Shown piece by piece: positions 3,039 to 61,125 of a stretch of 64,000 nucleotides of DNA (its first letter is position 1; every line of letters begins with the position of its first letter). The notes beneath the pieces were generated by a model. The model was not told the origin of the DNA and did not search any database. It saw only the letters and a list, made by a program, of their open reading frames with translations. Made by a program: the position numbers and the translations under genes. The stretch covers positions 3,224,001-3,288,000 of the forward strand of contig NW_026782003.1 in NCBI RefSeq assembly GCF_031769215.1. The letters are read 5' to 3'. Source of the DNA: Ylistrum balloti. Its lineage: Eukaryota.

Positions 3039-3189
3039 NNNNNNNNNNNNNNNNNNNNNNNNNNNNNNNNNNNNNNNNNNNNNNNNNNNNNNNNNNNNNN
3101 NNNNNNNNNNNNNNNNNNNNNNNNNNNNNNNNNNNNNNNNNNNNNNNNNNNNNNNNNNNNNNNNNNNNNNNNNNNNNNNNNNNNNNNNN
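3039..3189. other. Assembly gap (N run)
   Basis: 151 N. Confidence 1.
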
Positions 3190-27070: not shown

Positions 27071-28434
27071 TTTATATCCCTCCGAAGTTGTCAAAAACTT
27101 TATGGTGGTCTGTATTGCAACATATATTTTAATGGCATGCATTATATCGAAATACTCTAATGGGCTTTTAGACACTCTAGAAGTAAGTAAATATTTATGT
27201 GGCTATTTAGAAAAACTCCAGTCGATTACTACACATTTCCATGGTATGTTTTATCAATATTTTATTTAAAAAGGTAATATTCTGTAGATGTAGCTTTTAA
27301 GTAATATAGTCTTATAAAGAGAAAATCCTGAAACCTCCTTCGGGAGGGCGATATCGACATTGCATACAGAGGTCAATGACACTAGGATTAATCTTTACCC
27401 AAGGCCATCACTCTTCCCTCAATTATGTATGTGATATATCGTATTGTTGATTCAAGCCTTATCTGAAGACACAGATGATCACCCAATATTATTAGTAATG
27501 ATGTATGGTGATTGGAATGTATACATATCCATGAAATATCGTTTGATGTTTTTGTTCCGAACTTGACAATTACAAAACTCTATCGTGAATGATATTTTGT
27601 TTCTGTTTAATGGTGCTAAAACAAATACTGTGTCCGTGTCTCACACATCAAATGACGACATTCTATCACACAAGCTAATAATTGTAATTGCAAGAAGAAT
27701 TTAGCAAAATTTACAAGTTTGATATATGTTTTATCTCAACTTAATCTTACTTGTCCAATTATACATACCGTGTAAAGCTATGTGTACTAAATGAAACTAT
27801 CGATTATTGATAAGATTAATCAAAACTAATAATAACACCACATACCGCTTGAGACTGCAAAGACACGCAAATAAATAGCAAATTTTAATACAGTATAGGT
27901 ACATGCAGTGAACGCAAAGGTTGTACATAATACACAAAGTGAATGACGGTTTTCCATACAAATATGATGTTATGTACAGTGGACCCAAAGATTCTACGAA
28001 AGACACACAAGAGAATTTCACTTTTTCATACATATTTATACTTAGATACAGAACAGCCAAAAAATATGAAAACTGCATTATTCAATAAATGTCTTAATTG
28101 TCCTATATTTGACAGTTCTGAAACAACATCAAGTACATGTGTATATTATGAACCTTGAAGGATTACGGGAACGTGTGTATGCAGTATACACATTATGCTT
28201 CTTAACACTTACACAATATTACTACATTTTCTGGATGTAAAGAATATAAAATGCAAATGTACTTTAATGAATGTGTAACTGGTAAATTCACATGATAGCA
28301 GGTGTGTGAGTAAACACAAAATAGATACTATCAAAATAATATTGAATACCTAATATGGTACAACCATCAGTAAACATTTAGGCAATGTAAATAATTGTTT
28401 CGAACACTAACTAATTCTTGTTTTATTTCCACAG

Positions 28435-28566
28435 GTATCCTAAACCCCAGTCAAACCTCCGTACATGACCTCATTGACGACCTCCTGATTCGATTGGGAA
28501 CAAACATCAGTATCACTTATATCAACACAACCGTCAGGGGCGATAATCTTGATCAATACCAAAACG
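28435..28566 (+). CDS. iGluR exon: start of ATD (GILNPSQTSVHD...DQYQN), phase 1-1
   Basis: Acceptor ttttatttccacag|G, donor AACG|gtaagt, 132 nt open; joins in frame to the next exon. Confidence 0.8.
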
Positions 28567-37500: not shown

Positions 37501-40500
37501 CATTTGCACACCTGCTTCTGCATTTACTGTTCATGGTGAAACGTTCGCCACCGTTTGACTTTTATCCAATATGACTAACATTTTGTTAAAAATGAAGCTT
37601 ATCCATCCAAAATTTCATACCAGGGGAAAAATATACAGGAGGGAATACAATTCTTGTCCGAATATTTTACCGCCTCCGAAATTTATAACAATGCTCATTG
37701 TCTCTTGTTTAATTTGACATCTGTTTACTGTAACTAATGGTTACTGACCTAATTTTCCACAGAACGTATTAGGTGTTTTAACCATGTCACCTACCAGCGT
37801 TACAGTCATATAGGCAGATAGCAACTTGATGTATTAACTATAAAATGGCTTGTTGTCTTTTGTCACGCGATTTCTGAAGTTACCGTCGTAATTTATTGCT
37901 GCGATGCGGTAATGAATGTGTCTGTGTTCTGACATTGTGTAGGCAACTGTTGTGCTTGACCTGCGTGTGCTTAGTTTTAATTGAATTGAACTAAAANNNN
38001 NNNNNNNNNNNNNNNNNNNNNNNNNNNNNNNNNNNNNNNNNNNNNNNNNNNNNNNNNNNNNNNNNNNNNNNNNNNNNNNNNNNNNNNNNNNNNNNNNNNN
38101 NNNNNNNNNNNNNNNNNNNNNNNNNNNNNNNNNNNNNNNNNNNNNNNNNNNNNNNNNNNNNNNNNNNNNNNNNNNNGTGTGAAAAAACACAGAGCGTTGG
38201 TAATACTTTTAAGTAAATGTAAATTCTGGAAATATATATATATATATAAATAACTGAAACACACGGTTGTCCACTTATAAAATAACCGTAATAATAAATG
38301 TGTTGTATTATTGTATAATGTTCTTTTTACTCTTTGATTTATCAGGTGTTTAAGATGTTGGTAATATTTTCAACTTAATGAAAAATTCTGAAAACGAAAT
38401 ATGAAATATAATTGAAACGAAAGGACGCCCACCTTTAACAACTGCTATCGTAAATGTGTTGTAATATTGTTTAATATTCTTTTTTCCAGGCATTGTATTT
38501 AAGTTTACTTTCCCGTCCAAATACATGGCTGGTTGTAACCATGGTAAGTAACTACTAAATTATCAGGCTTTTCTACATAAAGTCCTCGTTTGGAAGTACA
38601 CTATAATTTTGCTAAATGTCTTCATCGAATAGATTTCATCAGATTGAGTGGACATTCATGCATGTCTTTTGTCGTATTAATTATTGAATCATCTTAAAAA
38701 GATTATACAGATGCTGGAATTTTATATTCTGTACTAATTTCCACATTGAATGGATGTGCTTTGCTTTTCAATAATTATCCTAACTATTCCAAAACAGATT
38801 ACCAACACACACTTAATACCACTTTTATTTCTACATCAATCCAGCATGTTGATCTGTTGGTTGATTTTCTATCATTATAGGACAAGAAACTAAACTTTCG
38901 CTGTATGAAGGTGATTCATTTTAGGCTGTAATAAAATATCTAAAGGAAAACAACGATCGGTCTAAATATTCATCAATCATCTTGAACTCGTTTATGAGAC
39001 AGCAAAATGGTACATGTACAATGCACAAGTAAGCAATACAGACAATGTCAAAATGCTGAAAGAGATTCAAACAATTCAATGTATAGTTCGGATTCTTGAT
39101 TGAAGTATTACTCAATCGCCTTACATTCCGCTATGCTAACTTAAACGAATCTAGGTAAGAAACATCATCAAATATAGATATAATGTTATTAAGGATATAT
39201 AAAAAGACAATTATGCCAAATACAAACAAAATATTCAATAAACTATACAGCAATTAATTAATGCAAAACCTTTGAATGAGGAACAAAACTGAAAAATCTT
39301 AATCATCAAAGAGTTTTTTTATTCTCAAAATGATGAAATGAGTACGGTCAGCATCTCGGTCAATATGGAGGAATATACGCGTTGCTAATAGGTCAATTGC
39401 AATATGTGTTACTTAACATAATGTTACCAAGGTATACACTGACCCCCTGGAGATCGATTCATGTGAAAGCAGTAACGCATAACAGCCGCGTTTATACATG
39501 ATAGCTTTGATTTACTGTATCGTTTCTTCACAGCTGACCGAAGGGATGAGTAGTGAATTATTTACCTTTATAAATCATAATGAGGCATACATTGATTTAA
39601 CTAATTCACTCATTACTTGATAGATATACAGATAAACCGACTCGGTAAAACTCGACCAACTTAACAAGTCACCCAGATAAATACTGCTTTCATTAATCTA
39701 AATTGCATCTTAATTCAATCATTTTCATTATTTTCCCTCAGATTATTTTGAATGTATCGTGTAGGACTTCAGTTACCTATATACTTTTTAAGAAATATAC
39801 TTAACATCACAATTCCCTCTATATTCCACGAAAAAGTATTGGATTTACAATGTATAAGGCAAGAATTTTCAGGTAACTAATTGGCGAGACTTGTTCGATT
39901 CCATCACCTATCGCGTCTCATATTCATTTCTTATTGTTTCTGACTTCTGACCTAATTTTCTTAATCCATATATACGGCTTTGGTTATACAAAATGACCAT
40001 CTAATCCGGATCGTCGGTTGTAGGCCGCTGTGATAAAAGCTTTTTCTTCAACTGTAAATAGGTGGTGCTTGAAATGTACTGCAATGGTAATCCCCCTTCA
40101 TTTTGATATCTTCTGCCCGGTTCTAGGCGTGGTAATCCCTGCCGATAAATTGTTATTGTATTCCAACCACAACATCTACTCCAGACGATCTATATTAGAA
40201 CAATCTAACGCTCGTTTATTTCAAATGAAATGACAAACCTGAACCGCTTCAGCAACATTATATAGACTCATGCCATGGTGTTAAGCTTTGATCTTTTGAA
40301 AACCTATAGCTGTTAATGCATTTTCTGAGACACTTAATGATATTACCCAATGTCCACTGGCATGACGCATAAAGTAATTTCCGGTTTCTCTGTCGGTGAA
40401 CTTTGGAAGTAAATCGGTCTCACTTTTAAAATTAATAGTAAAACGCCCGGAATGGAATTGTGGGGATAGAGGTTTTCCGAAATCGATCATAAGCTTACAA

Positions 40501-43500: not shown

Positions 43501-46500
43501 TCACAGGAAAAAAAATAAAAGCAGGCATCGCTAATTTATCACTGTTCAATTGTCTGAAATGTTTCTTAGTGTGATTTTACCAGGTACCATTACCTGTCTC
43601 CATATTTAACGGAGTGATGGTTGTTTATGGAACTTACAAGTGAATATATATGATGCAAATTTACATTTCGTTTCTCCTAGCCATCATAATTTACACATTT
43701 AGAGTTGTTCGTGAATGGGACAAAATGGCTTTGGAGATGGTAACTTTGAAAGCTGATTACTAATAAACCGGAAATACGACTGTGTTGACTGTAAAATCTA
43801 TATATTCAAATCGGCTAAAACAAACTCGATTCAGCATTAGATAAATACCAACTCTAACATCTAACGTATTCTCTGTCATATTGTTTTTTTGTTCTTACTT
43901 TCCTATTTTGATTTTCAGGGAGTGGACGACATAGCCTTAGATAGGTACATAGATTCCAGAGCGAACATGACATCCCTGTCTCTTATGCTAGACACCAATA
44001 CTAGCTTTTGTGCCTTGACCGGTTCGAACTGGACATTGAACAACGCTGTATATCACGACTCTTTAAAGATTTATCAGGCTATGCTTGACTTTAACAACGG
44101 ATCTGGTAGATTCCAAATGCTCAAGACGTTACGACAGGTAACTGTGAACTCCGTGTCGTGGGTGTTGCATGTTGTTAATACATTAGCCTTAGCTCAATAA
44201 TTGTGTTTCTGTGAAACCTATATCCCCACAACAGTTATAGTATTGACAAGTTAAATATATATTGCACTTTTTGTAATCATACATACAGATATTTACATCA
44301 ATGACCAGTATTATATGACATACGCTCTATACAACACATATAGGGTAAGTTATCTTATTGAGATAATAGATATTGATGACTGGGAAACATCTTAATATAT
44401 TGTGATTATATTAGATAATTATTTAACTTGAGTTATTATGTAATCGTATTTTTAAACGTTTGAACTCTAAGTCTAGGTTGACAGAAGTAATTGAAATATT
44501 GTAGATATTATGAAATGTGTGGTAAAAGAAGGTCAATTATATTGTAGTTACAAGCAGGTGAAATGCAGACTTGCTGTAGTTATGGACAGTTCATATTGTA
44601 GCTATACTCAGGCTGTCATTGAGAATGTTAATCAAATATAAGTTGTTAACTGAAAGCTGTGACAAAGGATCTCTGAGATTTGCGGATTATTGGAAGAAAA
44701 CTATTAAACGTGTTCAAATGGTGCAAAAAGAAAAGATTTGGATCTTAAATCTCCAATCCTTAGAGGATATGTATGAAAGGAGAAATACTTGTACCTTTCT
44801 GAAATCCTCGGAAGAATTTTAACAATAATTAACCAGCATTTTACAGCTGTTTCATATTTCTAGGACCCGTCAAAGATGCTAAGTGCCTAAATTGTTGAAA
44901 CATAAGAGACGACAGAGGAGGATCAAACGTGGTTGAAATAAGGGTTAAAGACCTGATAGGGAGGACGTGCACAAACTCCAGAATTCAATAATTTTCCCAT
45001 TTAATATTCTTCATTGAATACGTTTAAGTGATCGTCAAGTACATGTGTATAATTTGAACTGTCACTAGATTTTTGTGTGTCCATTAAACCATTTTATCAT
45101 CTCTCCTGTCGAATTTTTCTAATGAAAGGAATTAAATACAATTTATAAGACTGATGTTGTCAGAAAACCTTGACCGTGGTTATTCATCTCACACTTTCAT
45201 GTCGCCCCCACTTAAAGTCGGTATTCGCGCATCCTCTTCGACCTTGGTTAGTAGCTAATGCTAGAGTTTCTCTTTACCGATATTTGTATTTCACATGTTC
45301 AGAATGGCGAATCTGGATCTTTCCTCGAGAATGAAGTGAGATAATGTTTTTAATCCTTTATTATTTTGTTTCATATCTACTTTACTTGAACTATGTAATA
45401 TCTTTATCTGACCGTGTCATTTGTATTTGCACATGGTCAGATCCAGCCTTTCTGCTTGTTAGTTGTATGCACCTATCACCCTTCTATATTTGTTCTACAT
45501 TGTTTAGTTGTCATTCAATTATCATATCTGAGTATTCTTCACATGACCCGTAAATGGATTTTTCAATTCACTCGTACATATATAAATTCTCATCACTAAG
45601 ATTTCATTCACATCATCTTTTTGGCGTTCTTCTTTGTGCATCTATAGACATGTATCATTGTAATAGTATTGCAGCAGTTACCGAAACGTCTGAATATCAT
45701 TTTTATTCAATATTCATTGTTAAAAAAAAAAAAAAAAAAAACTGCATCGAACACATTAAGCATTTCTTGAAAAGAAGCATTTTCATTTCAGTGGTCTGAT
45801 TGGCGTAACATTTGAAATAGCAATATATCAGATTTGTAAAAATGATGTTTTTGCATGTATTATCCGTGTTATTAATATTTACGGAGTTCCCAAGGTGTAT
45901 TTTCTGGATCCATTATATCTTATGAAAACTAAAAAAGAGTTGAAAAGAAAATGATTGACCACATGGGGTTTAAGGTGGGCACAGATTTGAGTTATCGATA
46001 TATACTGCCTTACTCCTTACTGACATGAAAACAACAAGAAAATATTGTGAAACGAATTAAAGCCCAAACGCAAATTCAATAAAACCAAGGCAAAATATCA
46101 ACAAAAGAAAGAATTACACAGAAACTCTTGAAAAAAGTACAAGCAGATTAAGACCAGATGTTTCGGAAGAGTACGCGTCCTCTGCTTTATCGACGACAGT
46201 CGCTATTTAAATCTTGATTCTAAGTAAGCAAAATCGCGTTCTCAAATGAGAACAAGGAATTCAACTGCGGAACCAACTGGCAAACTAGTTGAGATCAACA
46301 TTACCACTTCAATTAACCGTATTCAACGCCTGGAAAACTATTAACCTCATTATTACAACAGCTTCAAATAGACAAAATTTGCTGAATCGTATACTACTGA
46401 ATCATATTCACATTCAGATTATCAAACGGATGAAAACGTGGAATGCATGTAACTTTGGAAGGAAACGAGCATCCAAGTAGAGACTCATATATATGAAGTG

Positions 46501-49500
46501 GCATTTGAACTTACTTAATTCAACATTTAGTCAGGTTAAACTGTCATCGCTTTGCTTTCAAGGACAAGTGCTCTATGAGTCAAAAGATAAGCCTCTAAAC
46601 AGGAATTGTTAGAAGGACCTTATCATATGATTTCATATGAATAACTAACTAGAAAAGAATGACATTTATGCCGAAGTTGACAGTTAGCAAAGATAGGAAA
46701 TGTCAGTTTTCTCGATTTTACTAGAGGTATGGTTTTGCTTTGATATCCAAAGCTTGATAACCTACATCAATGTTTGCTCTTGCGATTTTTTTTTCCACTT
46801 TTGCCTGTCTAAAAATGAAGTTGCATTGGATTCAAAGTCTACTCGTGCATGTCATGTTTTCCTTGAAATCTTGAAGTAGCATGGATCGGTAGAGCTTTGG
46901 TAGACATACAGAGTCATAGACAATGTAGACACCATTGAAATATCATTGTTAATTACACTCAATCACTGTATATTTACTGTTTCTTTGAAAGCTTGAAGCA
47001 GCATTGATTTACAGAGTTTTTTCCTAGACATACACACTCACAGACACTGTAGGCATATCATCGTCCAAACACCATTGTAGTTTACTCTCACAGTATATCA
47101 GGTTGAGTCATACTTACCAATATCTAAAAAACAACATTAAACACATCTAAATCTTGGTTTACCTCATCCCATGTTTCCTATATACATGGGAAAACCGCAT
47201 GTGCTTTGTATACAAATATCAAATTCATTACATATTCTATAGTGTATTTTCCCCCATATATTAATCGTTGTATAATATGTTATGTCAACAAACATAGATA
47301 TATCTACTTAAACTTCCTGCATTAAACCAATTTACACAAGAACGATTTGTTTGACTGCAATTTACATATGATTTTATAGATCAAATTTTATTAGATCTAA
47401 ACGCCATAACGTTAAATGTCCCCATTAATATTTACATCAATACAAAACTCGCTTTAAAAATAAACACACCTAAATCAACTTTGTAAAGAGAACAAATTAT
47501 GTTTCCTGATTTAAATCTTATTTTTTATCAACAGAGCTTCCATGGCGTATATTGTTATTCTACTCGTTTTCAGATTACCATTGATGGGTGCACAGGTCAT
47601 GTGGAGTTCACAAAGGCGGGGAACAGAAAAGAGACGTTTCTTAGAATGTCTTCTCTTGCAACTCTGAAAAATGGCACAGTAAGTTTTGAAAATGAAATTT
47701 CTATGCAAATCATGGTATCAATTTCGGAAACTTTAATCGACTTCGGATAAATGTATACATCAAGGTATGTCTACCATGAGAATTGAAGTTGTAAACGCCG
47801 ATTATAAAGATAAAATAAAGAATATAAAATTGTCAGGGTTTTAACTCGAAGTTTTACGCTTTTTCATGTTGAGCTTCAGCTAGATTAAAACTTTTTGACA
47901 CCTTTTTTATTTGTGGAGACAAATGACACTGATTTCCAGGTAAGCGGTGTTGCTTGAAACCTTGTTTTTTATTTATTTTTCACATATAGACATTCAGATT
48001 CCTGAATGCGATTATCTTATTTTAGGTATTTATTGAAATATTTTTGTCCGTTTATAAGTCACTTGAGCGTATTCGTATTTGTTGACAGTAATGTTATGTT
48101 TTTTTGTATCTTGCGCACAAGAGTAAATGTGTTCAGGTAACTAGTGTAATTGTCATTCCCTAACACTGTTTATTTTTTAAAAAGTATACCCTTCTAGAGT
48201 TCGTATGTTTGGTCCACGAATTGCCACGTGTTATGGTGCACTTCCTTTGCGCTAGTGTTGTAGCATGGTTCACTTCCGGTAAAGCCCGGTCAAGAATTGC
48301 TCCTTTTCGTGAGAATGTAGCATGATTTACATCCTGGACACAACTGGTTATCGTATTTAAAACACAAAGCTATGTGACGTATTTGCAAATGTACCACCCA
48401 AAGCACCCATTGTAAAAATAATGTATTCTTTCCTGTAGCAAACGTCTTTGATGAAAATGAATCTGTTGTATTATATATATGTATTATTAGAAATTAAAGT
48501 TACATATTAGAAATGTAAAATGCACATTGTTCCAATAGGAATACAAGAGAAATAAGAAGAAAACAGAAAAAATATAATCCTTGACACAAATCTGTGAAAT
48601 ACTCATACCTAATTTCTATGAAGTTTTGTCGTGTTAATTTTTCAGTCATCTTCGTTTTATACTCCTCTCCTCCTTATACACCAATAGATTAATAAAACAT
48701 TTTAGATAATTTACTTTTTTTCATTTTTGCATTTGCTCATATTCAAAAGTACAAAAATGGAGTATTTTGCAAAATTAAGACAAAAAAAAAGCAAAAAAAA
48801 AAAAAAACGCATCCCTCATTTCGTTGTATGCCGATGTTGTCAAATATCGAGAGTGAGAGTCAAATGATGGATTTGAATGGATTATTGTATTTAAAACACA
48901 TATCTTACAAACTTTTATATTCTTTAAGTAATATAAGCAATATTTTATGTATCTTCAGAAATAGTACTGTAAATCTGAAAAAAAAAAAAAAAAAATGAAG
49001 AAAGCTTTGAATGAGGATGAACGAGAAAATCTTTTTATAAACCAATTGCAATATAAAATAGTTAAACACAAAAGAACAACAAAAATCAATATGCCAATAA
49101 TTTCCCTTAATAATCAGTGTAAGACGTATTTATGTTTTAATTTAGATGAAGCAGTTATTCAAATATTAGATAATCGGTTTGAGTATTTGATATTAATCAA
49201 CTAAATCAATTATGTCATGAAATAAATTATAGCGAAGGTTTCCCAATATGACACGTATATATCACAGTCTGAAGAAGAAAATGCATAGAGAATTGCAAGT
49301 CCTAGCATTAAGTTTCTCATGTATAACCAAATACAATTTCTCGTGTGCTACCATATAGAATTTCTCATGGAATGGCAAATATCATTTGTAAAATTTTCAA
49401 TGTCTTAGTAAATTTCATTCACGATGAACACATCAATGTTAGTTTTAAGATTTTTTTTAAGAAACGAGTATTTTTTGCCAAAACGTATGGTTGTCTTTAT

Positions 49501-52500
49501 CCTCTGTTATCTTAACTAAAATTTCCTTTTCTCAGTTAAAGGTACATATAATTCAAAATGAAGAATTTGTTTTTTTAATTGTCTTCTTTCGTCATCACTC
49601 CTTCGTGATAAAGCGAATCTATATATCATATTGTATCATTTTATTGATCGAATCGTTATGATTATATTCAGCTGTCAGAGCTGGAACTGTGAATTGCTCT
49701 CTTTTCTCTTTTCTTTATCCCATTTTTAGTCTCTTTCTGTGTTCCCCTCGTTCTCAATTTACCAACTTACAGGGATAAAATATCATATGCTATTTTGTAA
49801 ATTTTATTTCTTTTAATAAACAATATTTAAAAATACATTAAGCTGCATTAAAATCGATAATAACTGGGCATTAAGCACTCATAAAAGGCAACTGCTACAA
49901 GTGCCAATAAAACGGAAAGTCATGAGTATTTTGTCCTTTATGATTGTTTAGTTGGAAAAGTAAAATTTCACATAACACCAGGGTATTTTTATATTGATAC
50001 CGATGTATCTTTAATTCTATATTTGTGTTATATGAAATGACGCATCAACTGATTTTAATATGATTGACTTTTACACCTGTAACATTGTTGTTTCCTGACC
50101 CCTTTTAATTGACAATTTCCGATCTTGTCTAAACATCATATGAAGTTGTTAGTATCTAATATTAACTCCTATTAGTTCTTTAATATACTTTAGTCGTATA
50201 ATTAGTAGATGTTCATACTACTATATATATATCTTTATCTCTGAAAAGGCTGTGGGTCGCTTTTATTTTAAAGACTACTCCTGCAGAAGGCACACATTAT
50301 CTGGACTTTTTCTAATATGTCTTTTTTTCTTTAACTTTTTTTTAATGATTATTCCATGACAAAGCAATTTGCAATACGTGACGCTACCAAAGATTCAGCA
50401 TTACGGGTACCAAACCTTAGATACCTGAAAAATACAAAATTGGATCAAGTGCGGCTCAACATTTAAATATAGACAAGTTTATTTGACGACTTTGGATATT
50501 CCGTCTAGTCGTCCAGTTGTCTGTCAGGATTTCAAAGTTAAGCCATTAGCATCACTGACGAGTCCGAAATGACGACGCAGGTGTATGAGGCAGTTTAAGT
50601 CATTATTTGGCTCTGAGTATCTAGCTTTAAATTTGCATTGAAAGGTGTAGTTCATTAATGTGTCTTTTGTACAATCTCAATTTTTTTCTTCCTTCTGTAA
50701 AGATTTCCATACATTCTCGTAAATGCTAGTCGTTTGTTATGAAAAATAGCAAGTTCAGCACTTTTCCATTGTTCAAAACATGAAAGAATACTTGTTTTGT
50801 CGCATAATTTTCTGTGGTTTCAATCTTCGGTATCGTCACGTTATGAAATGGTCTTTATTATTGATAAAATGATCACGAATAAATATGAATGTAATCACTA
50901 TAAAATATATTCGAAAATAGAAGTGATACACAGTAAACACTATTTCGTACTATACTTCTCATAAATCTGTCAAGCTGTCAATATATCCAGGTCAAATGTA
51001 TATGGTGCCTCTCTCATGATTGCAGAATGTGGTGGGCTATGTTGTAGTTTGCTAGGAATGTACACGCCATACGTACATGTAGTTAGTGTAGTTTAAATGC
51101 TTTTCATGTCTATATATATAGACTCTGAATATCAAACATGTGCTCATTTTCGTGCTAATTTGAATATGGCTGGACATATATTTATACGGACATTATGACT
51201 GTTGATGAATGTATTTTTTCGTTTATCATAACTGATCTAAGTTTCAGTAAACAAAAAGACAGATTATGGTAATGGATAATTGACATAAAAAAACAAAATT
51301 ACTAACACACACGGAAATGAGCAACTGTGATCCATATCTCTATAATGTGTGTATTTGTAAGTGAGACTCTAGAAGGCAAAAGAAATATTCATATGTATTG
51401 CATATTATTTACTCCATAACTTAACGAAGCAATTCATTACAATGTTTTTTAATATTCCATTTTTAATCTGAATACATTTGAAGTATTTCCTTTTTGGTAT
51501 GTAACTTTTGTTCTAAAAAAATCTTAACTGATATTTTCGAATAGCCGATTATTTTCAAGGGGATGATATTTTCGCTGATGTTCTGGTACATAACAACATT
51601 GTAAACATTTGATATGTTGCAGAGTATGACATATGCAAAATGATCAGTGATATTAAATATAGTTTTAAAAAGCCTCATAGCGGAGTTGCTACATGAAACA
51701 GCTCACTAAAGACTATTCGCATACAATAATATTTAAATCTCTCAGAATAATTATAGTATGCAATAATATTTTCTTTTACATGTAAATGCAAGATAAAGAG
51801 ATATGAGCTATAATGCTCGGGCAAGCAAAAACAACGGCTTCTTGGCATTAAGTTAATGGTATTACGTTATATCCTTTTTGCGATTTACAAAACAATACTT
51901 CAATGCTAGATCAAGGTCATTAATGGTTGTTTTTACTTAATACTTGATATCAGGGCAAAATTCTCGAAAACCTGACGATTTTATATCTACAAGACCGCGA
52001 AATTTCAATATCTTGAATTAGTTTTTTTCAAATTTCGAAAAAGTCAATAAAATTTGTATCCACTTAAGTAGCCGGCTATATGATTGTATTATTATCTATC
52101 ATAAATCTACCTGGAGTCTCACTTCTCTTTGTATGTCTGCGAAGGTTTCTACGCCTGTGTTATGTATACTGATGCTTCGTTTCTGTTTTCTTTTCTTCAA
52201 ACATTTACAGAGTGCTTTATTTCAGTCAGGAACATGGAGGAGTCTTAAGGATACCATGCAACAGCGGATTGAACCGTCTAGGTCATACGACAGCGTTATG
52301 AGAATGGGCGATGACATATTTGGCAACGAACCACTACGAATTACAACTATCATCGTAAGTGCCTTATTGAATTTGTGTTTTATCTTTAGAGATATTATTA
52401 TTAATTAAACATTTGTTTTGGTCATATTTTTAGGTAACATCAAGGTAGTAAAAACATAACCCTAATGTCACTGTACTACATTGTACGAAGGCTTTCAGAG

Positions 52501-55500: not shown

Positions 55501-58500
55501 ACGTCAGACAAAACGACGCAATGCTCACCTACCTGTAGCATAGTGTTATACAGTTTTAATCACGATTTGTTGTATAAATTCGTGGGATGCCCCGAAGACT
55601 TCTGATATCCCTCAGTGACATTCTCGTCTAGATTTTGACTGAAATTTCCTCACACGCCTCTCAAACTTCAAAATTTAGCCTTTAGCATCGCCGATGAGTC
55701 AGATAAGGATATCATCGTTTGTTCTATTGCATTTAACTCTTAATTTCAATTTAAATATGCTATTCACATGCGTATCCTCTGTATAATCTTTATTTATCTG
55801 TTCATGTGTCGTTGTTTTTACTTTTTAAATATCTGCTGTGTTTCTGTTTTCTTTCTTTTTTGCATTTCTATGTCCATTCTCGGTTCCTGTTTCGGTTGAA
55901 GTCTTTAAGTCTATTTATTATCATCATTATAGAGCTCCTCTCTATTGGTTGTCTACTGCCCCTTACCTTCATATCTTCACTGATCATGTTATATATCCAT
56001 TGAACAAATATATCGACCATTGTGTTTGTTATCGGGGAAGAGATATGTTGATGTAACTTAAACTGAAGCAAAGGACATCAGCAACAACTGATGAACCTCT
56101 CATATCCGCTATCGGGTTTGTAAACATACCAACTATTTTTTACTTGCGAGCGAAATGTCCAACAAGCTGAGGAACAATATGAGACACTCATTATCTTCAA
56201 GTGTACATGTAGAGACACAAAGGGTGTTTCAATATAATGTGTACACACACATAGTCTTATCAGTAACAATATATTATAAACCTTATTAGAATACCAATTT
56301 GTTCCTAAAACTAGCATCTCTTTATAAACATTCTTCTTGATACAGATATATATCTATGAATATATAGATATTGTAATAAAAGCTGAGTCTTATATTGGTT
56401 ATAAAGATATTATTTACATTGGACTTCCTGTTTTAGTCCTTAAATCATCATACTATCTATATATCGTACTAGATATAACGTTAGTGTATTAGATGCAGAA
56501 ATATCCATTACATGTAATGTGCGATACAGTCGTAAAACTAAATGTGTCATCACCAAAAGAACTTGTCTGTTTGTGACGTTTTACAGCTCATACGTCACGA
56601 TATGGAAAACAATTGGCATTACTTTATTGCTAATTTGATTTTATCTTCCCCTTTAGGAGCCTCCATTCATCCAATGGAAGAATGACACTCCCCTGTCACA
56701 CCCTATATACAACCTGAACGACCATCTGGAGGGCTTCTGTGTCAGTGTTCTACAAGAAATGGCGAAACTATTGGATTTTACGTACAATCTGACATTAGTA
56801 CCTGATGGCAAATTTGGGAGTTTAAAGGCTCACGGATGGACAGGAATGGTCAGAGTTTTGTATGAAAAGGTATTGAAACCTAATAATGCATAATTATTAA
56901 ATACAGATACAGAAAATCTTTAGTTAGATTCACCATTAAAACAAACTCAAGAATATCGACACCATCCACAACAACAGCAATAAAAATGAAACTCATGGTA
57001 GTGATTCTTGAAATATATCATGGAAAAGGTATATATATCAAATATCATATTGTTATTTCTGTTAAGACATTCTTTTTGTTTGTCTAGCTTTACTCTACAA
57101 GAATAAATATTCGAAATTAAGCGATTAATATTCTGTAAGAAGAAAGGTATGTTGACATTTATCTATGTTAGGTACACATTAGTTTGTAGTCCATAAAATA
57201 ATGTGTAATATGGTGAATATAATGATTTAAATGTGATTGATATTTTTTTCAGGAAGCCGATATTGCTCTTGCACCTTTCCAAATTACACCCAAGCGGTCA
57301 ATGGCTGTGGATTTTACTAAGCCGTTCATGACAAAAGGTACCAGCGTTGTTGTCAAAAAACCAGACAGGAGTGTATCACCATTTCAGTTTTTATCCCCTC
57401 TGTCAAAATATGTGTGGATAGCAATATTTGTGTGTTTCGTGACTACAGCCTTAGTGCTGTTTGCGACTAGTCGTGTGAACAACGACAAAAAACCAAAATT
57501 TATGCACAATATGAGAGAAAGTTTTTGGTATATCTGGGGAACCATCTTACGTGGAAATTTGACAGGTTCACCCACTGGGATATCCAGTAGAATTGTAAGT
57601 GCCGCTTGGTGGTTTTTCTCTTTAATTATTATTTCTATATATACTGCTAATTTAGCTGCATTTTTAACTATTTCTAATGCACATATACCTATAGACTCAG
57701 CTGCTGACTTAGCAGATCAGACAGATTTTGACTATGGTACTGTTGATGGCAGTCAAATAGAAAACTTCTTTAAACATACAAATATATCGCATTATGCAAA
57801 GATGTGGGCACATATGCACTTGCTCTCGAAGGAATCTATGGTAAGAAGAGTTGAAAATGGATTCGATCGAGTTCTAAGAGAGAAATATGCCTTCCTGTGG
57901 GACTCGCCGGTAGTGCGGCATCATATTGCCAACGACTGTGGTCTAACAGAAATAGGGAGCCCATTCGATTTGAAAGGATATGGAATAGCTACGCAAAAGG
58001 ATTCCATTTACACTGAAAAGCTGTCTTGGGCAACATTAAAGCTGAATGATGATGGCATTCTATATCGTTTGGAAGGAAAGTAAGTATAACGAAAAGAAAC
58101 TAAGTACACCCACGTGTATTCACACGTGTCAACGTGACTATTCCCTAATCTGTATCTATGTATCAAATTACCCCTTATAATATTTTAATTTGTTTCAAAC
58201 CAGATTATACACTTCTGTAGGGACGAGATGTGATGAATGATCGTACAAGGATGTCAGGTGTGCGTAATAGGCAGAGGTTTAAACCTTACCGTTGAAGGTA
58301 TAGAATGTAGGGCCATATAACACTTTTAAAGGTGCTAATATACTTAGAGTCAGGCTATGGAAAGTAGGGACACAGAACACTTTCAAAGGTGCGGATAAGC
58401 TAACAGTTAGGCTATGGAAAGTAGGGACATATACTATTTTCAGGTGCGAATATACTTACACTCAGGTTACGGAAGGTAAGAACATAAACTACATTCAGGT

Positions 58501-61125
58501 GCGAATATACTTACAGGTAATCCAAGATGTCGTCAAGGTCAGTCAAACATGGTTTCCTGGTTTATTTTTGCATAACTTGTCTAGAAAGCAGATGCAATTT
58601 TCAATCGGTTATAGACGCTTTCTTGACACTTAAAAATTGAATCAGAAGGCTGTGAAATCATTAACTCAACTCTCTTTTGTCCAATTTGAATTTTCCTCAT
58701 TTGGGTTTGAAAATTTGTGCGAATACTATCACTGACGATTCCTATAAAGACGAAATAGGGTTATTATTCATTAAAGCGTTTAAAAAGATCTTTAAAGAAA
58801 GTGCCCAAGATGGTAGGACCAAAATCAGATAATTAGACGATTCTTTACCTGAGTGTCTGTAAGACAATAAGTGAAAAATTTCTTAATACATATTTTTTGT
58901 ATGTATTAGAAGTTTTATACTAAACATCGGATAACATCTTTAAATGTACACTAGAAATAAGTAATTATATACGCACGAGCCGTGAACTTGAAATTTAAAA
59001 TTCTATCAATATACCTTAATCCTTATTCCAAATAAACTACTGTCAATTATTATCTTATACATGAAAAAAGACACACATTTGAATAGGGCCTTTCGAAATA
59101 TATTTAAAGTAAGACACAGTAAAGACGAACATTGAATTAAACTGCAGAAAGCAGTCTGTCTTGTCCTTCTAGGACTCATCAGTATTATATGCTATTGTTG
59201 TATCGCATTGTCGTTCTAAATCGCGATTCCTGTTATGTTACGATAAACAAGATTCAAGCACTATGTAGGTGTAGCATTGAATATATTCTGTCCTTGCGTG
59301 TAGCATCTAGAGCCACGGTTCTGGCCTAGAATTTCAAGTTATATACCGTAAGCAGATGTGTAGTAAGCGGATGATCAACCTCATGTAACTTAGATTGAAG
59401 GTTTGTGTCAATATTGCTTATCTCTTTCCGAGTTCGTATGCTAGCTGTGCTGATTCTTTGCCGTTGTGTTCAATATCAGCATCCATCGCAGGTTATCAAT
59501 GTCCGCCGTTTGCAACACAGATATTCTGTCTGAGAGAGTTAATTCAAGATGAAAGATACAATCTATTAATCTCATTTAAGTTTCCGTTAACTTAATAAAA
59601 CAGAACTAATCTTGAAGACGATAGAAACAATTGTGGTGAATAATGGTATATGTTTCGATGGGTTCTTATGCAATCAGATTTCGTCTCATTAAAGTGGAGG
59701 CAGAAAAATGTCACGTGTGGTAGTGCTAGATTTTTTTAATGTAGTTCTATCAATAAAAGACAAAGATCAATCAACATGGTGATGTTCAAGTCCGGAATTC
59801 TCAATAACTCAAGCTAAGACCTAGGTTTTTTGGTCATTTCGCAGTAATTTTATTTTCCTTCCAACCTCATCTCATGTAAGGTTATGGGCAATTATCTAAT
59901 TTCATAAAACCCTTGAAATCTCTCTTCCTATTCTCTTTCGCACAACGTCATGGTCTATTTTTCATTTCATATAACATTTGTCATCTTTACAAACTGACTA
60001 ACTCTATCGTTAACTGAAAGCTAATTTGGACAATGCAACACAGTAATTTGTTTATTAGAAATACGTCGATTTTAATATGGTATTGTTATGGCATTGAAAT
60101 CGTGGATGGTGTATTGTCTCTCTCATACAAGGTTAGAAAATTATTATTGAAACAATTCTTTGTTTGTGACAACATACTCATCATATCTCATATTTCGAAA
60201 TTTTTGTTCAAGACTTTGTCGACTGACTGCTTAATTTAACAGAGATGTTGAACAATCAGGAAAGATTACTATTATGAGTAACTTAACATTTCACTTGTAT
60301 AATAATTTTCTAATTGACTATAAGCGTTTTAAGTCATATATTTGAAAATACCCAGTGTGAGCAAGGGGATTTACTATGCTCCAACAGGTGGTGGCGTCGA
60401 CCAAATTGCCCCGATCCCCGTCAGAGTGCCAAGAGCAAAGCCATTGAAATCAATGTTGCTTCCGGAATGTTTATTGTACTTCTTGGAGGCATTGTCTTGT
60501 CCATAGTTGTGTTCCTGGGAGAATTGCTATACTACAGGGCAAGGGCAAAAAGTAAAAAGGTAGGTAAAAATAAGATTAAGTCTATCATGTCTAGATTGTT
60601 TTCAAATGACAGAAGCTCAGCATGATGCTCAATATTGATTTTTAGACGACTTTGGTTTTCTTGTTAGTCTGCCTAATCGTTAGGTCTGCTCTACGTTGCC
60701 ATAATATGAGCTCAGGTGTGATGAATAAGACGGAAAAGTGATAGTCTCTCATTTGCAGCACATGCGATCTTTTCTACTTTTGCAATCCACCATTTCGTTT
60801 TTTTCCTTTTTTTTTTATCAAATATTGGCCAGGAATTTATTGACTCTTTTACGTTAAATCAGGTTTCGGATGAGTTTAACCACGTTTAATTTGAATCTTG
60901 CTTTATGTAACAAAATACAAGTAGTCAATTATAACACAAATCTGTAAATTTTCATTTTGTACTTTGATTTAGCCCATCGAGGAGCGTGAAGAAAACAATT
61001 TTCACAGTTCCGGTAACCATGTTGGAAATAACGCTGAAACTAGCAGTAAGGACGATGAGGTACGTACAGTTCTGTCGCGTACATTAAGCATTGGCGAGAA
61101 CTGTGTACACAATCGATGGGAGTAG
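28435..61125 (+). CDS. Ionotropic glutamate receptor family subunit, non-NMDA (AMPA/kainate/delta-like) and divergent; 11 joined exons, 5' end incomplete
   Basis: Join 28435-28566, 29100-29345, 35375-35553, 38490-38543, 43919-44137, 47574-47678, 52211-52354, 56657-56869, 57253-58079, 60388-60559, 60973-61125. All introns are GT..AG and the phases match (1,1,0,0,0,0,0,0,2,0). Hallmark motifs present: PDGKFG, DIALAPFQITPKR, VDFTKPFM, WWFFSLIIISIYTANLAAFLT, KGYGIA, KWW..C and an M4 helix. The subfamily cannot be assigned without a phylogeny, so no symbol is given. Confidence 0.93.
29100..29345 (+). CDS. iGluR exon: ATD (ADEIVKTLKISALIG...FNWLRVGILYDNEA), phase 1-1
   Basis: Acceptor gtattgcag|, donor GCTG|gtaagt, 246 nt. 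FNWLRVGILYD matches the ATD W..v.ilYD motif. Confidence 0.92.
30425..30480 (+). mobile_element. Family B copy with a heavily decayed hammerhead motif
   Basis: ttaggtttcaaaattaaggcctttagcgtca CTGACGG matches the flank of the 50.5 kb and 55.7 kb copies. Confidence 0.5.
31403..31500 (-). ncRNA. Degenerate hammerhead motif, family B
   Basis: Minus strand: aatca CTGACGA GTT CTAGGAT GAC GAAA C AGCT G CA ctgg. The cleavage triplet is GCA rather than GTA. The flank aaatttgaattttcctca is shared with the 58.7 kb copy. Confidence 0.72.
35375..35553 (+). CDS. iGluR exon: ATD (ASQVVINLIG...NAEIILTQ), phase 1-0
   Basis: Acceptor tctatttcag|, donor CAA|gtaagt, 179 nt. RNALKELRDNYYEKFVILCS resembles the ATD lower-lobe segment. 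Confidence 0.9.
35878..36000 (+). mobile_element. Family A copy
   Basis: gatgaagcagaagatgataactctttcggaacacctggtctc...catattttgccttatttttattg aligns closely with the reverse complement of 46065-46205. Confidence 0.75.
36052..36155 (-). mobile_element. Family A copy, inverted relative to the copy about 50 bp upstream
   Basis: The reverse complement contains aagcagaagatg, ggagtc and tttggccctatgtttatggaatttg. Confidence 0.55.
37997..38176. other. Assembly gap (N run), intronic
   Basis: 180 N. Confidence 1.
38490..38543 (+). CDS. iGluR exon: ATD (ALYLSLLSRPNTWLVVTM), phase 0-0; absent from the ORF track
   Basis: Acceptor ttcttttttccag|, donor ATG|gtaagt, 54 nt. It fills the A..lgm......yii.sl segment between its neighbours. 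Confidence 0.85.
40619..40806. other. Assembly gap (N run), intronic
   Basis: 188 N. Confidence 1.
41888..41965. mobile_element. Possible MITE or DNA-transposon fragment
   Basis: GC-richer island gacagagaaatctctatccgag...cgaggctttgccgagggt resembles a motif I recall from mollusc interspersed repeats. No partner TIR was found. Confidence 0.25.
42316..42432. repeat. 42-bp tandem repeat, about 2.7 copies
   Basis: gttacgcttcatgaa.tg.tgacgttatcaattggcgacat starts at 42317, 42359 and 42401. Confidence 0.92.
43919..44137 (+). CDS. iGluR exon: ATD (GVDDIALDRYIDSRANMTSLSL...MLKTLRQ), phase 0-0
   Basis: Acceptor ttgattttcag|, donor CAG|gtaact, 219 nt open. Confidence 0.9.
46065..46205 (-). mobile_element. 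Family A copy (best preserved)
   Basis: Reverse complement: gataaagcagaggacgcgtactcttccgaaacatctggtc...gatattttgccttggttttattgaatttg. Confidence 0.75.
47574..47678 (+). CDS. iGluR exon: ATD (ITIDGCTGHVEFTKAGNR...LKNGT), phase 0-0
   Basis: Acceptor ctcgttttcag|, donor ACA|gtaagt, 105 nt; carries the G.TG...F...G.R motif. Confidence 0.92.
50522..50595 (+). ncRNA. Degenerate hammerhead motif, family B
   Basis: gcatca CTGACGA GTC CGAAAT GAC GACG C AGGT G TA tgagg. The GAAA box is mutated; stem I catca/tgagg is nearly intact. Confidence 0.68.
52211..52354 (+). CDS. iGluR exon: end of ATD and start of S1 (SALFQSGTW...PLRITTII), phase 0-0
   Basis: Acceptor acatttacag| after a pyrimidine tract, with an alternative in-frame acceptor at 52226; donor ATC|gtaagt. 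Contains the GTW and LRITTI motifs. Confidence 0.88.
53431..53478. repeat. 24-bp tandem duplication
   Basis: gtacggtaataggaacg(a/g)attgtt at 53431 and 53455. Confidence 0.9.
55640..55720 (+). mobile_element. Family B copy, 5' half of hammerhead motif only
   Basis: tgaaatttcctca...cttcaaaatttagcctttagcatcg CCGATGA GTC; no GAAA box follows. Confidence 0.55.
56657..56869 (+). CDS. iGluR exon: S1 (EPPFIQ...EGFCVSVL...PDGKFG...WTGMVRVLYEK), phase 0-0; absent from the ORF track
   Basis: Acceptor cttcccctttag|, donor AAG|gtattg, 213 nt; classic S1 motifs. Confidence 0.95.
57253..58079 (+). CDS. iGluR core exon: end of S1, M1, M2 pore loop, M3 and most of S2, phase 0-2
   Basis: Acceptor tatttttttcag|GAA GCC GAT, donor AA|gtaagt, 827 nt. 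It extends the 57301-58083 ORF 16 codons upstream. Confidence 0.97.
58255..58517. repeat. 55-57-bp minisatellite, about 4-5 copies, intronic
   Basis: The ggtgc anchor recurs at 58331, 58388, 58443 and 58498; shared aggctatggaaagtagggaca and gaatatactta. Confidence 0.85.
58682..58768 (+). ncRNA. Degenerate hammerhead motif, family B
   Basis: caatttgaattttcctca...ctatca CTGACGA TTC CTATAAA GAC GAAA T AGGG TTA. G10.1 is changed to T and stem III is decayed. Confidence 0.6.
59147..59190 (-). ncRNA. Degenerate hammerhead motif, family B
   Basis: Minus strand: CTGATGA GTCC TAGAA GGAC AAGA C AGACT G. The first box and the 4-bp stem II are perfect; GAAA is changed to AAGA. Confidence 0.6.
60388..60559 (+). 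CDS. iGluR exon: end of S2 and M4 (KWWRRPNCPD...GMFIVLLGGIVLSIVVFLGELLYY...KSKK), phase 2-0
   Basis: Acceptor atgctccaacag|G completes the AA+G Lys codon; donor AAG|gtaggt; contains the hydrophobic M4 helix. Confidence 0.93.
60973..61125 (+). CDS. iGluR probable last coding exon: C-tail (PIEEREENN...KDDEVRTVLSRTLSIGENCVHNRWE*)
   Basis: Acceptor actttgatttag|, open in phase 0 to TAG at 61123-61125. An internal donor-like GAG|gtacgt at 61059/61060 makes the true end uncertain. Confidence 0.65.
   Translation, partial: PIEEREENNFHSSGNHVGNNAETSSKDDEVRTVLSRTLSIGENCVHNRWE

Follow-up and report, generated by a model that had tools for sequence, protein, structure and literature searches.

A scallop gene on the forward strand of the window (the whole stretch of 64,000 nucleotides that was analysed) is, judged by its sequence, an orthologue of Aplysia GluR6, an orphan iGluR subunit. 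On balance we favour the reading that it encodes an orphan pan-mollusc GluR6-type AKDF subunit whose ligand would be a small neutral alpha- or omega-amino acid and not L-glutamate; the ligand itself cannot be named from sequence. The glutamate-type pocket of kainate and AMPA receptors (Gly653, Ser/Ala654, Thr655 and Leu/Met704-Glu705, in GluA2 numbering) is absent, the scallop protein having S-Q-I and W-D at these positions, and the residues that fix the amino-acid backbone (Arg485, Asp705, Pro478, Tyr732 and Glu402) are kept. In the alignments Gln654 is a conserved hallmark of a pan-molluscan orthogroup and not a peculiarity of the scallop gene.

Structure and integrity of the gene

The Ylistrum balloti locus is a multi-exon iGluR gene of 12 exons spread over about 33 kb on the + strand, of which the pocket and pore exons carry the finding. 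Pfam domains PF10613 (Lig_chan-Glu_bd) and PF00060 (Lig_chan) match its exons within the window, and PF01094 (ANF_receptor, amino-terminal) is precomputed on its orthologues. The nearest named protein is Aplysia GluR6 (P0121), and the best solved relatives are GluK2 and GluA2 (HMMER, E about 1e-61 to 1e-56). The exons encoding residue 40 onwards, through to the stop, are colinear with Argopecten irradians protein P0286, which is 95% identical to the scallop protein over the LBD-TMD region, and the frame is open with zero internal stops. A search of the window for residues 1-39, the first coding exon with the signal peptide, gave no credible match. The exons and sites are as follows; percentages are identities to P0286.

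28434..28568, + strand: amino-terminal-domain exon, residues 40-84 of the Argopecten orthologue (tblastn, 73%; boundaries approximate)
29099..29350, + strand: amino-terminal-domain exon (tblastn, 85%; boundaries approximate)
35371..35553, + strand: amino-terminal-domain exon (tblastn, 82%; boundaries approximate)
38487..38543, + strand: amino-terminal-domain exon (tblastn, 95%; boundaries approximate)
43919..44158, + strand: amino-terminal-domain exon (tblastn, 90%; 3' end approximate, the last aligned residues overlapping the next exon)
47571..47678, + strand: exon closing the amino-terminal domain (tblastn, 94%)
52211..52354, + strand: linker exon and start of S1 (AG acceptor, GTAAGT donor, phase 0 at both ends; 92%)
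56657..56869, + strand: S1 exon (PF10613, E 2.8e-14; 94%)
56657-56659, + strand: Glu402 in the S1 exon (sequence read)
56813-56815, + strand: Phe at GluA2 position 450 in the S1 exon, TTT (sequence read)
57253..58079, + strand: large exon with the end of S1, M1-M3 and pore loop, and most of S2 (PF00060, E 1.2e-28, and PF10613; GluK2 match, E 3e-61; 96%; donor at 58080 confirmed by related-species transcript contigs)
57274..57297, + strand: upper-lobe ligand contacts Pro478, Phe479, Gln480 ... Arg485 (sequence and GluK2 alignment)
57280-57282, + strand: Gln480, CAA (sequence read)
57295-57297, + strand: Arg485, CGG (sequence read)
57550..57552, + strand: Arg at the pore Q/R site, CGT, genome-encoded (sequence; the +4 site is Thr)
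57634..57663, + strand: gating motif S-I-Y-T-A-N-L-A-A-F, the SYTANLAAF motif (invariant columns Y130-T139 in the 25-sequence alignment A1)
57751..57759, + strand: lower-lobe alphaF motif Ser653-Gln654-Ile655 (sequence, alignments and AlphaFold model)
57898..57903, + strand: lower-lobe beta10/alphaI motif Trp704-Asp705 (invariant in 25/25 of alignment A1)
57979..57981, + strand: hinge Tyr732 (sequence and orthogroup alignment)
60388..60559, + strand: exon with the end of S2 ('WWRRPNCPDP') and M4 (splice sites read; 91%)
60973..61125, + strand: last coding exon, cytoplasmic tail and TAG stop (acceptor confirmed by related-species transcript contigs)

The start of the exon at 60388..60559 was also read by a loose end in run X6. 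The gating motif and the M1, pore loop, M3 and M4 topology are present, with long helices where expected in the AlphaFold model. Foldseek against the PDB matched the fold to GluK2 and GluA1-4 structures of the LBD-TMD, with TM-scores of 0.62-0.74 (normalised by query length), which confirms an iGluR LBD-TMD fold and does not tell the classes apart.

No RNA runs of Ylistrum balloti were found; the runs found were a DNA run (X7) and transcript-like contigs of three related species. The transcript contigs from these species contain exons only and join 58081 to 60971 via 168 letters (exon 11). Of 25 listed differences in the large exon, 22 fall at third codon positions by our count, and none of the 25 touches the codons for S-Q-I or W-D. 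Spliced transcripts in related scallops, together with differences that lie mostly at third positions, argue that the gene is under constraint.

Pocket residues and their conservation

The codons for GluA2 positions 450, 480, 485, 653-655 and 704-705, once read and translated, all lie where the first-pass annotation had placed them. The HMMER alignment of the large exon with solved GluK2 is gap-free from SYTANLAAF through 'YGTVDGSQIENFF' (GluK2 'YGAVEDGATMTFF') to 'YAFLWDS', which is aligned with GluK2 'YAFLMES', so that S-Q-I is matched with G-A-T and W-D with M-E. The Argopecten protein, 95% identical, has an AlphaFold model (LBD pLDDT about 86-96) in which S-Q-I forms an N-terminal helix cap, the helix starting at model residue 251, which is Gln654, and W-D sits at a strand-to-helix junction (residues 299-300). 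Solved iGluRs have their alphaF and beta10/alphaI motifs at these places. A shifted register, the weak point that the annotation had named in its own reading, is ruled out by the gap-free alignment and the AlphaFold secondary structure.

The Aplysia-GluR6 orthogroup comprises bivalves, gastropods, one chiton and octopus, with about one gene per mollusc. Its conservation was assessed in an alignment of 232 AKDF-type receptors, 39 from the orthogroup and 193 others, the latter being nearest relatives by search and not a random sample, none of them an NMDA or Epsilon receptor. Arg485, Trp704, Asp705, Tyr732 and the Arg of the Q/R site are invariant among the 39 members; at the last position 150/193 of the other receptors have Gln. 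Gln654 is found in 37/38 orthogroup members against 5/193 other AMPA/kainate/delta-type receptors, and Gln480 in 24/38 against 0/193, with Ser480 in the remaining 14. The commonest residue averages 72% per column over the orthogroup LBD-TMD, and the pocket residues are invariant or nearly so. As judged from the Gln480 and Gln654 counts in the 232-receptor alignment, the signature amounts to more than chance. The earlier description of both Gln as atypical is supported, both being very unusual among the other receptors. Within the molluscan orthogroup itself conservation is uneven, Gln654 being a hallmark while Gln480 alternates with Ser.

Position 655 is Ile or Thr within the orthogroup. The gastropod (caenogastropod and heterobranch) orthologues, Aplysia GluR6 among them, read S-Q-T, and heterodont bivalve orthologues have Gly653. 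Because of this Thr655 in gastropods and Gly653 in heterodonts, the lower-lobe motif is not uniformly 'glycine-like' across the orthogroup.

The annotation had treated positions 480 and 654 as normal anchors of the alpha-amino and alpha-carboxyl groups. In GluA2 the alpha-carboxylate contacts at these positions come from backbone NH groups, which a change of side chain leaves in place. The one contact that changes is that of the Thr480 hydroxyl with the amine.

Class placement and characterised relatives

By similarity and tree position the gene belongs to the AKDF subfamily, within a spiralian clade to which neither AMPA nor kainate receptors belong. Its best 60 solved-structure matches are all GluK or GluA, and the near relatives from a search of 1.84 billion proteins, among those with a source name or a tree position, are all AKDF-type. 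Tree support is 100/100 for the orthogroup and 100/99 for the spiralian W-D clade. The kainate class implied by the NCBI name 'kainate 2-like' was rejected, as GluK2 (P0135) and GluK5 (P0166) fall in an AMPA+kainate clade (100/100) with the orthogroup outside it.

In an unrooted tree without vertebrate GluD, a split with 93/85 support separates the spiralian clade and Delta from hemichordate Phi-like proteins, AMPA and kainate, the Delta side holding echinoderm, hemichordate, amphioxus and acoel deltas. Published trees disagree on protostome clades of this type, and some give a 'protostome delta' placement, with which the Delta-side position found here agrees. An AU test did not reject a grouping of the spiralian clade with the hemichordate Phi-like proteins (delta lnL 1.9, p-AU 0.40); the probable Phi proteins (hemichordate P0195, P0226 and P0222) adjoin AMPA+kainate in the best tree. 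Measured against the delta motif (Ser653, Ser/Ala654, Val/Leu655, Trp-Asp), the scallop Ser653, Ile655 and W-D fit and position 654 is Gln instead. No subunit of the Phi class carries Gln at position 586 (PMC6307864), and the scallop Arg there is compatible with Phi. The Lottia orthogroup member LOTGIDRAFT_111488 was not found in the Ramos-Vicente gene table, nor were the orthogroup motifs found in the examined part of the Ramos-Vicente alignment.

Aplysia californica GluR6 (NP_001191542 / AAP41208, P0121) and the scallop protein are 66% identical in the large exon and 57% in the LBD-TMD; Greer et al. 2017 (PMC5225553) count GluR6 among the 'orphan' iGluRs. It shares F450, P478, F479, Q480, R485, S653, Q654, W704, D705, Y732 and the Arg of the Q/R site with the scallop protein, and differs in having Thr655 in place of Ile and Ile in place of Glu402. 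A sister paralogue (Pecten maximus XP_033742742 'glutamate receptor 2-like', P0126; Aplysia GluR8-like) belongs to the same spiralian W-D clade (96/91). It has E402, F405, F450, P478, R485, S653, a non-polar 655 and W-D in common with the scallop gene, but is ~40% identical to it and differs in S480, Gly654, Phe732 and a Q/R site occupied by Gln. In Elysia crispata this paralogue lies two locus tags from the orthologue.

Among characterised receptors, the deltas share Ser653, a non-polar 655, Trp704-Asp705 and an aromatic residue at 450 with the scallop protein, which differs in Gln654 (Ser/Ala in deltas), Gln480 (Thr/Val), Phe479 and the Arg of the Q/R site (Gln/Asn in the deltas compared). 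Rat GluD2 (S-A-V/W-D) binds D-serine and glycine and is not gated, whereas starfish and acorn-worm GluD (S-S-L or S-S-V/W-D) are gated by GABA (PMC10861852). The likeness to delta receptors that the annotation had noted is borne out for GluD2 (S-A-V/W-D) and starfish GluD (S-S-L/W-D). The glycine site of GluN1 (F484, T518, R523, S688, V689, W731, D732) corresponds to the scallop pocket in the Phe, Arg485, the non-polar 655, the Trp and the Asp, but Gln stands in place of both its hydroxyl residues, T518 and S688. In sequence and in fold the scallop gene matches GluK2 and GluA best, and not NMDA subunits. Membership in the GluN1 type of site was rejected on the two Gln; the pocket would work like it at best.

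Two more distant receptors carry a long polar residue at 654. Trichoplax AKDF 19383 (alphaF S-E-A, beta10/alphaI W-Y, with W-D in a gated mutant) has glycine, D-serine, alanine and GABA as activators; the residue at 654 contributes to the response, and glycine/alanine activity is lost in the E-to-S mutant (PMC13648236). It resembles the scallop protein in Ser653, the long polar 654, a non-polar 655 (small in Trichoplax) and Trp704, and differs in having Glu at 654 instead of Gln and in being a distant, placozoan relative. Nematostella Epsilon 5500937 (S-Q-P) is responsive to glutamate, aspartate and, weakly, D-serine, with no response to glycine (PMC13648236). It was the only characterised receptor found with a scallop-like Ser-Gln at 653-654, but belongs to the Epsilon subfamily and has Pro655; by analogy, it is the main caution against a ligand other than glutamate.

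Scallop AKDF receptors altered at 653 and 655 have been put forward as glycine-binding candidates by Zeng et al. 2021, who also name mollusc 'Zeta' classes (PMC8437780). Compared by description, the scallop 'GluF' (Phi) receptors of that study, six Pecten genes, have Gly/Val653 and not Ser (PMC8437780).

Ligand and working of the subunit

Ser653 with a non-polar 655 corresponds to the published glycine-type rule (PMC6307864; PMC13648236), and GluN1 (S-S-V/W-D) and GluD2 (S-A-V/W-D) bind glycine and D-serine (PMC13648236). The description of the pocket as not glutamate-type is largely borne out, as it departs from G-S/A-T and L/M-E and has the S653, non-polar 655, W704-D705 and F450 pattern of GluN1 and delta. 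The label of a glycine/D-serine signature follows the published rule but is too narrow, because the motif class also spans the GABA-gated starfish delta receptors (S-S-L/W-D). That glutamate is an unlikely agonist is plausible from the motif rule and the delta-like kinship, yet not safe, given glutamate-responsive receptors with S-Q-P and G-S-L and the Thr655 of gastropods. The ligand class rests on motif analogy.

Candidate ligands would be glycine, D-serine, alanine or a compound of the GABA/beta-alanine type, in place of L-glutamate. In the proposed arrangement the carboxylate would be held by Arg485 together with the 480 and 654 backbone NH groups, and the amine by Asp705, the Pro478 carbonyl and the side chain of Gln/Ser480. 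Where AMPA/kainate receptors take the glutamate gamma-carboxylate, the sub-pocket would here be lined or filled by the conserved Gln654 side chain along with Ile655 and Trp704.

The strongest alternative, though an unlikely one, is that the subunit is still a receptor for an acidic amino acid (L-glutamate, or L- or D-aspartate). The Gln654 amide and the backbone NH of 655 would then bind the distal carboxylate in lieu of the Thr655 hydroxyl, and Trp704 would shorten the pocket and so favour aspartate. The responses of Nematostella 5500937 to glutamate and aspartate but not to glycine speak for this, as do the glutamate selectivity of Exaiptasia 110238381 (G-S-L), the S-Q-T of gastropod orthologues including Aplysia GluR6, the Gly653 of heterodonts and the retention of Glu402, Arg485 and Tyr732. 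Weighing against it, the scallop protein has Ile655, W704-D705 is invariant, and W-D is listed only for glycine-selective receptors among those reviewed in PMC13648236. The nearest characterised clade, Delta, is moreover not glutamate-preferring, starfish GluD having an EC50 of 7.8 mM for glutamate and 13 uM for GABA.

Ranked behind an acidic ligand, and unlikely too, is a subunit that is not gated by agonist alone but is silent, modulatory or structural, as are vertebrate GluD or GluK4/5. Its cleft would be filled by its own Gln480, Gln654 and Trp704, or a ligand would merely tune partner subunits. All 39/39 members carry Arg at the Q/R site, a residue that in GluA2 restricts both conductance and the assembly of homomers. 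Vertebrate deltas are not ligand-gated, and an oyster 'GluD', the only mollusc 'delta' tried in oocytes, gave zero current with poor surface expression. In amphioxus GluE7 a bulky alphaF residue (Tyr653) is predicted to block the pocket (PMC6307864). However, invertebrate delta receptors are active channels, and the strict conservation of Arg485, Asp705, Pro478 and Tyr732 with an intact SYTANLAAF gate argues that a carboxylate/amine ligand is bound and coupled to a working gate. That the odd pocket reflects decay, in a pseudogene or a relaxed, functionless copy, is barely credible. In its favour, the search of the window gave no first coding exon, and no RNA runs of this species were found. 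Against it, the frame stays open from residue 40 until the stop at 95% identity to Argopecten, mollusc classes share the signature, the transcripts of related scallops are spliced and differ mostly at third positions, and the AlphaFold model is confident. A pseudogene was rejected on the open frame, the conservation and the transcripts.

For the favoured reading of a GluR6-type subunit with a small neutral ligand, the Arg that every member encodes in its genome at the Q/R site leads us to expect low calcium permeability and low conductance. The scallop subunit probably works as a heteromer, possibly with the sister paralogue (S-G-I/V, W-D, Gln at the Q/R site). Support for the heteromer idea is indirect and comes from the Arg of the Q/R site and the adjoining paralogues in sea slugs.

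A more specific and distinctly improbable proposal is that the GluR6 orthogroup serves a transmitter without an assigned mollusc ionotropic receptor, such as that of the D-aspartate current of Aplysia. Aplysia neurons have a D-aspartate-activated cation current with a pharmacology unlike that of known glutamate-receptor currents (Carlson and Fieber 2011, 2012, as described in PMC5225553). On this view a new class of ligand would sit in a short pocket made by Trp704 and the conserved Gln654, joined in gastropods by Thr655.

The general idea of non-glutamate pockets in scallop AKDF receptors is already published, so that only an unusual ligand would make the advance more than incremental. Several animal lineages have iGluR subunits gated by glycine, D-serine, alanine, aspartate or GABA, and the residues that set their selectivity are poorly understood. 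In the present orthogroup a strictly conserved alphaF Gln occurs together with a Trp-Asp of the GluN1/delta type and a Q/R-site Arg encoded in the genome; the orthogroup is a natural test of the role of a long polar residue at 654. Under the name 'kainate 2-like' at NCBI, it is a well-defined target for deorphanisation in the synaptic-physiology models Aplysia, Lymnaea and octopus.

Gene structure and molluscan orthologues

The stretch flagged in the first-pass annotation, 56801-57905, falls in two exons of one plus-strand gene, which together match Pfam Lig_chan-Glu_bd and Lig_chan and both align with solved chains of GluK2 and GluA2 (E of about 1e-61 to 1e-56):

56657-56869, plus strand, exon
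57253-58079, plus strand, large exon

With the closest full-length relative as guide (P0286, the 861-aa Argopecten irradians protein ‘glutamate receptor ionotropic, kainate 2-like isoform X4’), eleven coding exons lie between 28434 and 61125, the splice sites of the last five having been read directly from the sequence. The reading frame is open from residue 40 through the stop, and identity with the Argopecten protein is 95% across the ligand-binding domain and membrane part (LBD-TMD). A search upstream, in window 1-28400, gave no signal-peptide exon (Argopecten residues 1-39), and long ORFs inspected there held no other convincing coding sequence. Runs of N at 3039-3189, 37997-38176 and 40619-40806 were kept as they are.

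A search for Y. balloti RNA runs found none. Four runs were compared with 56500-61300, and the transcript evidence comes from three other organisms. Run X7 is a DNA run, because introns and exons are covered alike. Three separate studies supplied contigs of the three other organisms; these are about 93% alike and lie on exons only. Two of them join 58081 to 60971 via 168 other letters, the length and position of exon 11, and a loose end in a third run reads the exon 11 start. Such contigs represent spliced orthologue transcripts from related scallops. They also back splicing at donor 60559/60560, which if unused would leave 22 further codons to a stop (60560-60625, ORF 60314-60625) as an alternative short tail. 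Within the intron that separates the large exon from the M4 exon, X7 contig word depth rises to 309 at 59076-59236 (also 58593-58753), versus about 10 in other places, and many short contigs stop here; this suggests an interspersed repeat of high copy number.

A word search with the large exon returned 16 exon-sized proteins at 63-76% identity, the next being at 49% or less. The first named relative in an exhaustive search was Aplysia californica GluR6 (P0121), described as an ‘orphan’ fitting no vertebrate class (Greer et al. 2017, PMC5225553). With GluR6 as query, orthologues were obtained at 53-80% identity before a fall to 44% or less; they form a single orthogroup across Mollusca.

Genera and groups with GluR6 orthologues
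Gastropods: Elysia, Biomphalaria, Physella, Littorina, Babylonia, Haliotis, Patella, Lottia, Gigantopelta
Bivalves: Mytilus, Ostrea, Crassostrea, Saccostrea, Tegillarca, Argopecten, Mercenaria, Ruditapes, Mya, Dreissena, Potamilus, Sinanodonta
Other molluscs: the chiton Liolophura; Octopus

In Mytilus coruscus P0267 (983 aa; source name ‘kainate 1, kainate 2’) two successive parts each match exons 52211-52354 and 56657-56869; either the S1 exons are internally duplicated or the gene model is a fusion or misassembly.

Ligand pocket and its conservation

Read from the sequence, the codons assigned by the first-pass annotation to Phe450 (56813), Gln480 (57280), Arg485 (57295), Ser-Gln-Ile (57751-57759) and Trp-Asp (57898-57903) are correct (GluA2 mature numbering throughout). 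Its register was also borne out, since the HMMER alignment with GluK2 is gapless from the SYTANLAAF motif to the end of S2. S-Q-I (residues 653-655) stands opposite GluK2 G-A-T, and W-D (704-705) opposite M-E. The Argopecten LBD-TMD was modelled with AlphaFold (pLDDT 82 on average; 86-96 in most LBD blocks of ten residues); in the model S-Q-I lies at a helix cap and W-D at a strand-helix junction, the alphaF and beta10/alphaI motif positions of solved receptors. A fold search confirmed the iGluR fold and nothing finer.

The pocket was compared across 232 receptors, 39 of them orthogroup members and 193 other sequences. Arg485, Trp704, Asp705, Tyr732, Val650 and the Arg at the pore Q/R site were invariant in the 39 members, and Glu402, Pro478 and Phe479 were present in at least 95%. 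Gln654 was found in 37 of 38, the exception being the second Sinanodonta copy. Position 655 is Ile (n=27) or Thr (n=10), with Thr confined to caenogastropods and heterobranchs, Aplysia among them, while position 653 is Ser (n=30) or Gly (n=9), eight of the nine Gly being in heterodont bivalves. Against a mean frequency of 72% for the commonest residue per LBD-TMD column in the orthogroup, the pocket, invariant or nearly so, is one of the protein's most constrained parts. In the large exon, 22 of the 25 differences listed against the transcripts fall at third codon positions (our own count from the frame), a signature of purifying selection, and none falls in the S-Q-I or W-D codons.

Position 480 is Gln in 24 members, among them every sampled gastropod and pteriomorph bivalve, and Ser in 14, from heteroconch bivalves, the chiton and the octopus. 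Outside the orthogroup Gln480 occurs in none of the 193 sequences and Gln654 in five (two nemertean and three hemichordate proteins). The GluN1-like signature noticed at first reading is real and conserved, and both Gln are atypical, as had been proposed; conservation held for Gln654 and only in part for Gln480. Gln654 defines the clade, and Gln480 is a lineage-variable alternative to Ser, the sister-clade state. A change between Ser and Gln at this position (57280-57282 and orthologues) takes at least two nucleotide changes, which together with the lineage distribution implies a gain then reversal, or two parallel gains.

Classification, Q/R site and sister paralogue

In a careful maximum-likelihood analysis of 61 LBD-TMD sequences, which gave an unrooted tree without vertebrate GluD, the orthogroup was recovered with support of 100/100 on a long stem (0.71). 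Its sister is a mollusc clade characterised by S-G-I/V, W-D, Phe732 and a Q/R-site Gln, to which Pecten maximus P0126 (XP_033742742) and Aplysia-GluR8-like proteins belong; both clades join nemertean and annelid proteins in a spiralian clade (100/99). Three further groups were recovered: Delta, made up of echinoderm, hemichordate, amphioxus and acoel sequences (100/100); a separate hemichordate group, probably Phi (99/93); and AMPA with kainate (100/100), in which vertebrate GluA4, GluK2 and GluK5 serve as anchors. As the orthogroup lies in the spiralian clade, separate from AMPA plus kainate, the NCBI label ‘kainate 2-like’ lacks support.

The sole deep split in this unrooted tree places Delta and the spiralian clade on one side and all other groups on the other (93/85), and an AU test did not reject grouping the spiralian clade with the Phi-like clade instead (p 0.40). 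This ambiguity matches disagreement in the literature, where protostome receptors of this kind have been termed early-branching deltas (PMC10861852), Phi or ‘Zeta’ (PMC8437780), and uncharacterised AMPA/kainate/delta/phi groups whose place varies by method. The Lottia orthogroup member was looked for in the Ramos-Vicente gene table and was absent.

At the Q/R site (57550-57552) the codon CGT gives a genome-encoded Arg, with Thr at the +4 site; all 39 orthogroup members carry this Arg and the sister paralogue carries Gln. The Arg and Thr together point to a channel that would pass little calcium, escape polyamine block and have a small conductance. Edited GluA2, with Arg at its Q/R site, prefers heteromers. 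By likeness the present subunit is possibly heteromer-dependent, and the sister paralogue is a candidate partner. The sister lies two locus tags from the GluR6-type gene in Elysia crispata, and both are on one 248-kb contig in Elysia marginata:

Elysia crispata RRG08_006863, RRG08_006865, RRG08_006867 (P0358, P0316, P0261): neighbouring GluR6-type gene and S-G-I/V sister paralogues
Elysia marginata P0301, P0127: neighbouring GluR6-type gene and S-G-I/V sister paralogue

In Dreissena, Mercenaria, Mya, two Haliotis species, Liolophura, Biomphalaria and Littorina the longest contigs carrying the two paralogues agree in length, which suggests that both lie on one chromosome-scale record. The arrangement resembles an ancient tandem duplication whose linkage has been conserved; the sister gene is absent from the 64-kb window.

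Probable agonist

The backbone-anchoring pocket residues are intact, implying that the ligand carries both an amine and a carboxylate. The lower lobe is of the S653, non-polar 655 and W-D class, which has been tied to small ligands, namely glycine and D-serine in GluN1 and GluD2 (PMC13648236, PMC6307864) and GABA in invertebrate deltas (PMC10861852, PMC13648236). A placozoan S-E-A receptor responds to glycine, D-serine, alanine and GABA, with its long polar residue 654 contributing to activity (PMC13648236). Given this published association, a small neutral or omega-amino acid is favoured by analogy as the most likely agonist, and Gln654, Ile655 and Trp704 would seal the sub-pocket for the gamma-carboxylate. 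The glycine-type alternatives first put forward were too narrow, as invertebrate deltas of the same motif class take GABA.

There is real evidence against this reading. A Nematostella S-Q-P receptor responds to glutamate and aspartate and not to glycine, and a G-S-L receptor is glutamate-selective (PMC13648236). Lower-lobe motifs have often been poor predictors of selectivity in mutagenesis, and gastropod orthologues (caenogastropods and heterobranchs) keep Thr655. The earlier interpretation was reasonable but overconfident about glutamate.

A literature search on the GluR6 clade found no functional study. The scallop gene is the orthologue of a known but unstudied orphan subunit, and its pocket (S-Q-I/T with W-D, Gln or Ser480, and Arg at the Q/R site) appears to be an undescribed variant.
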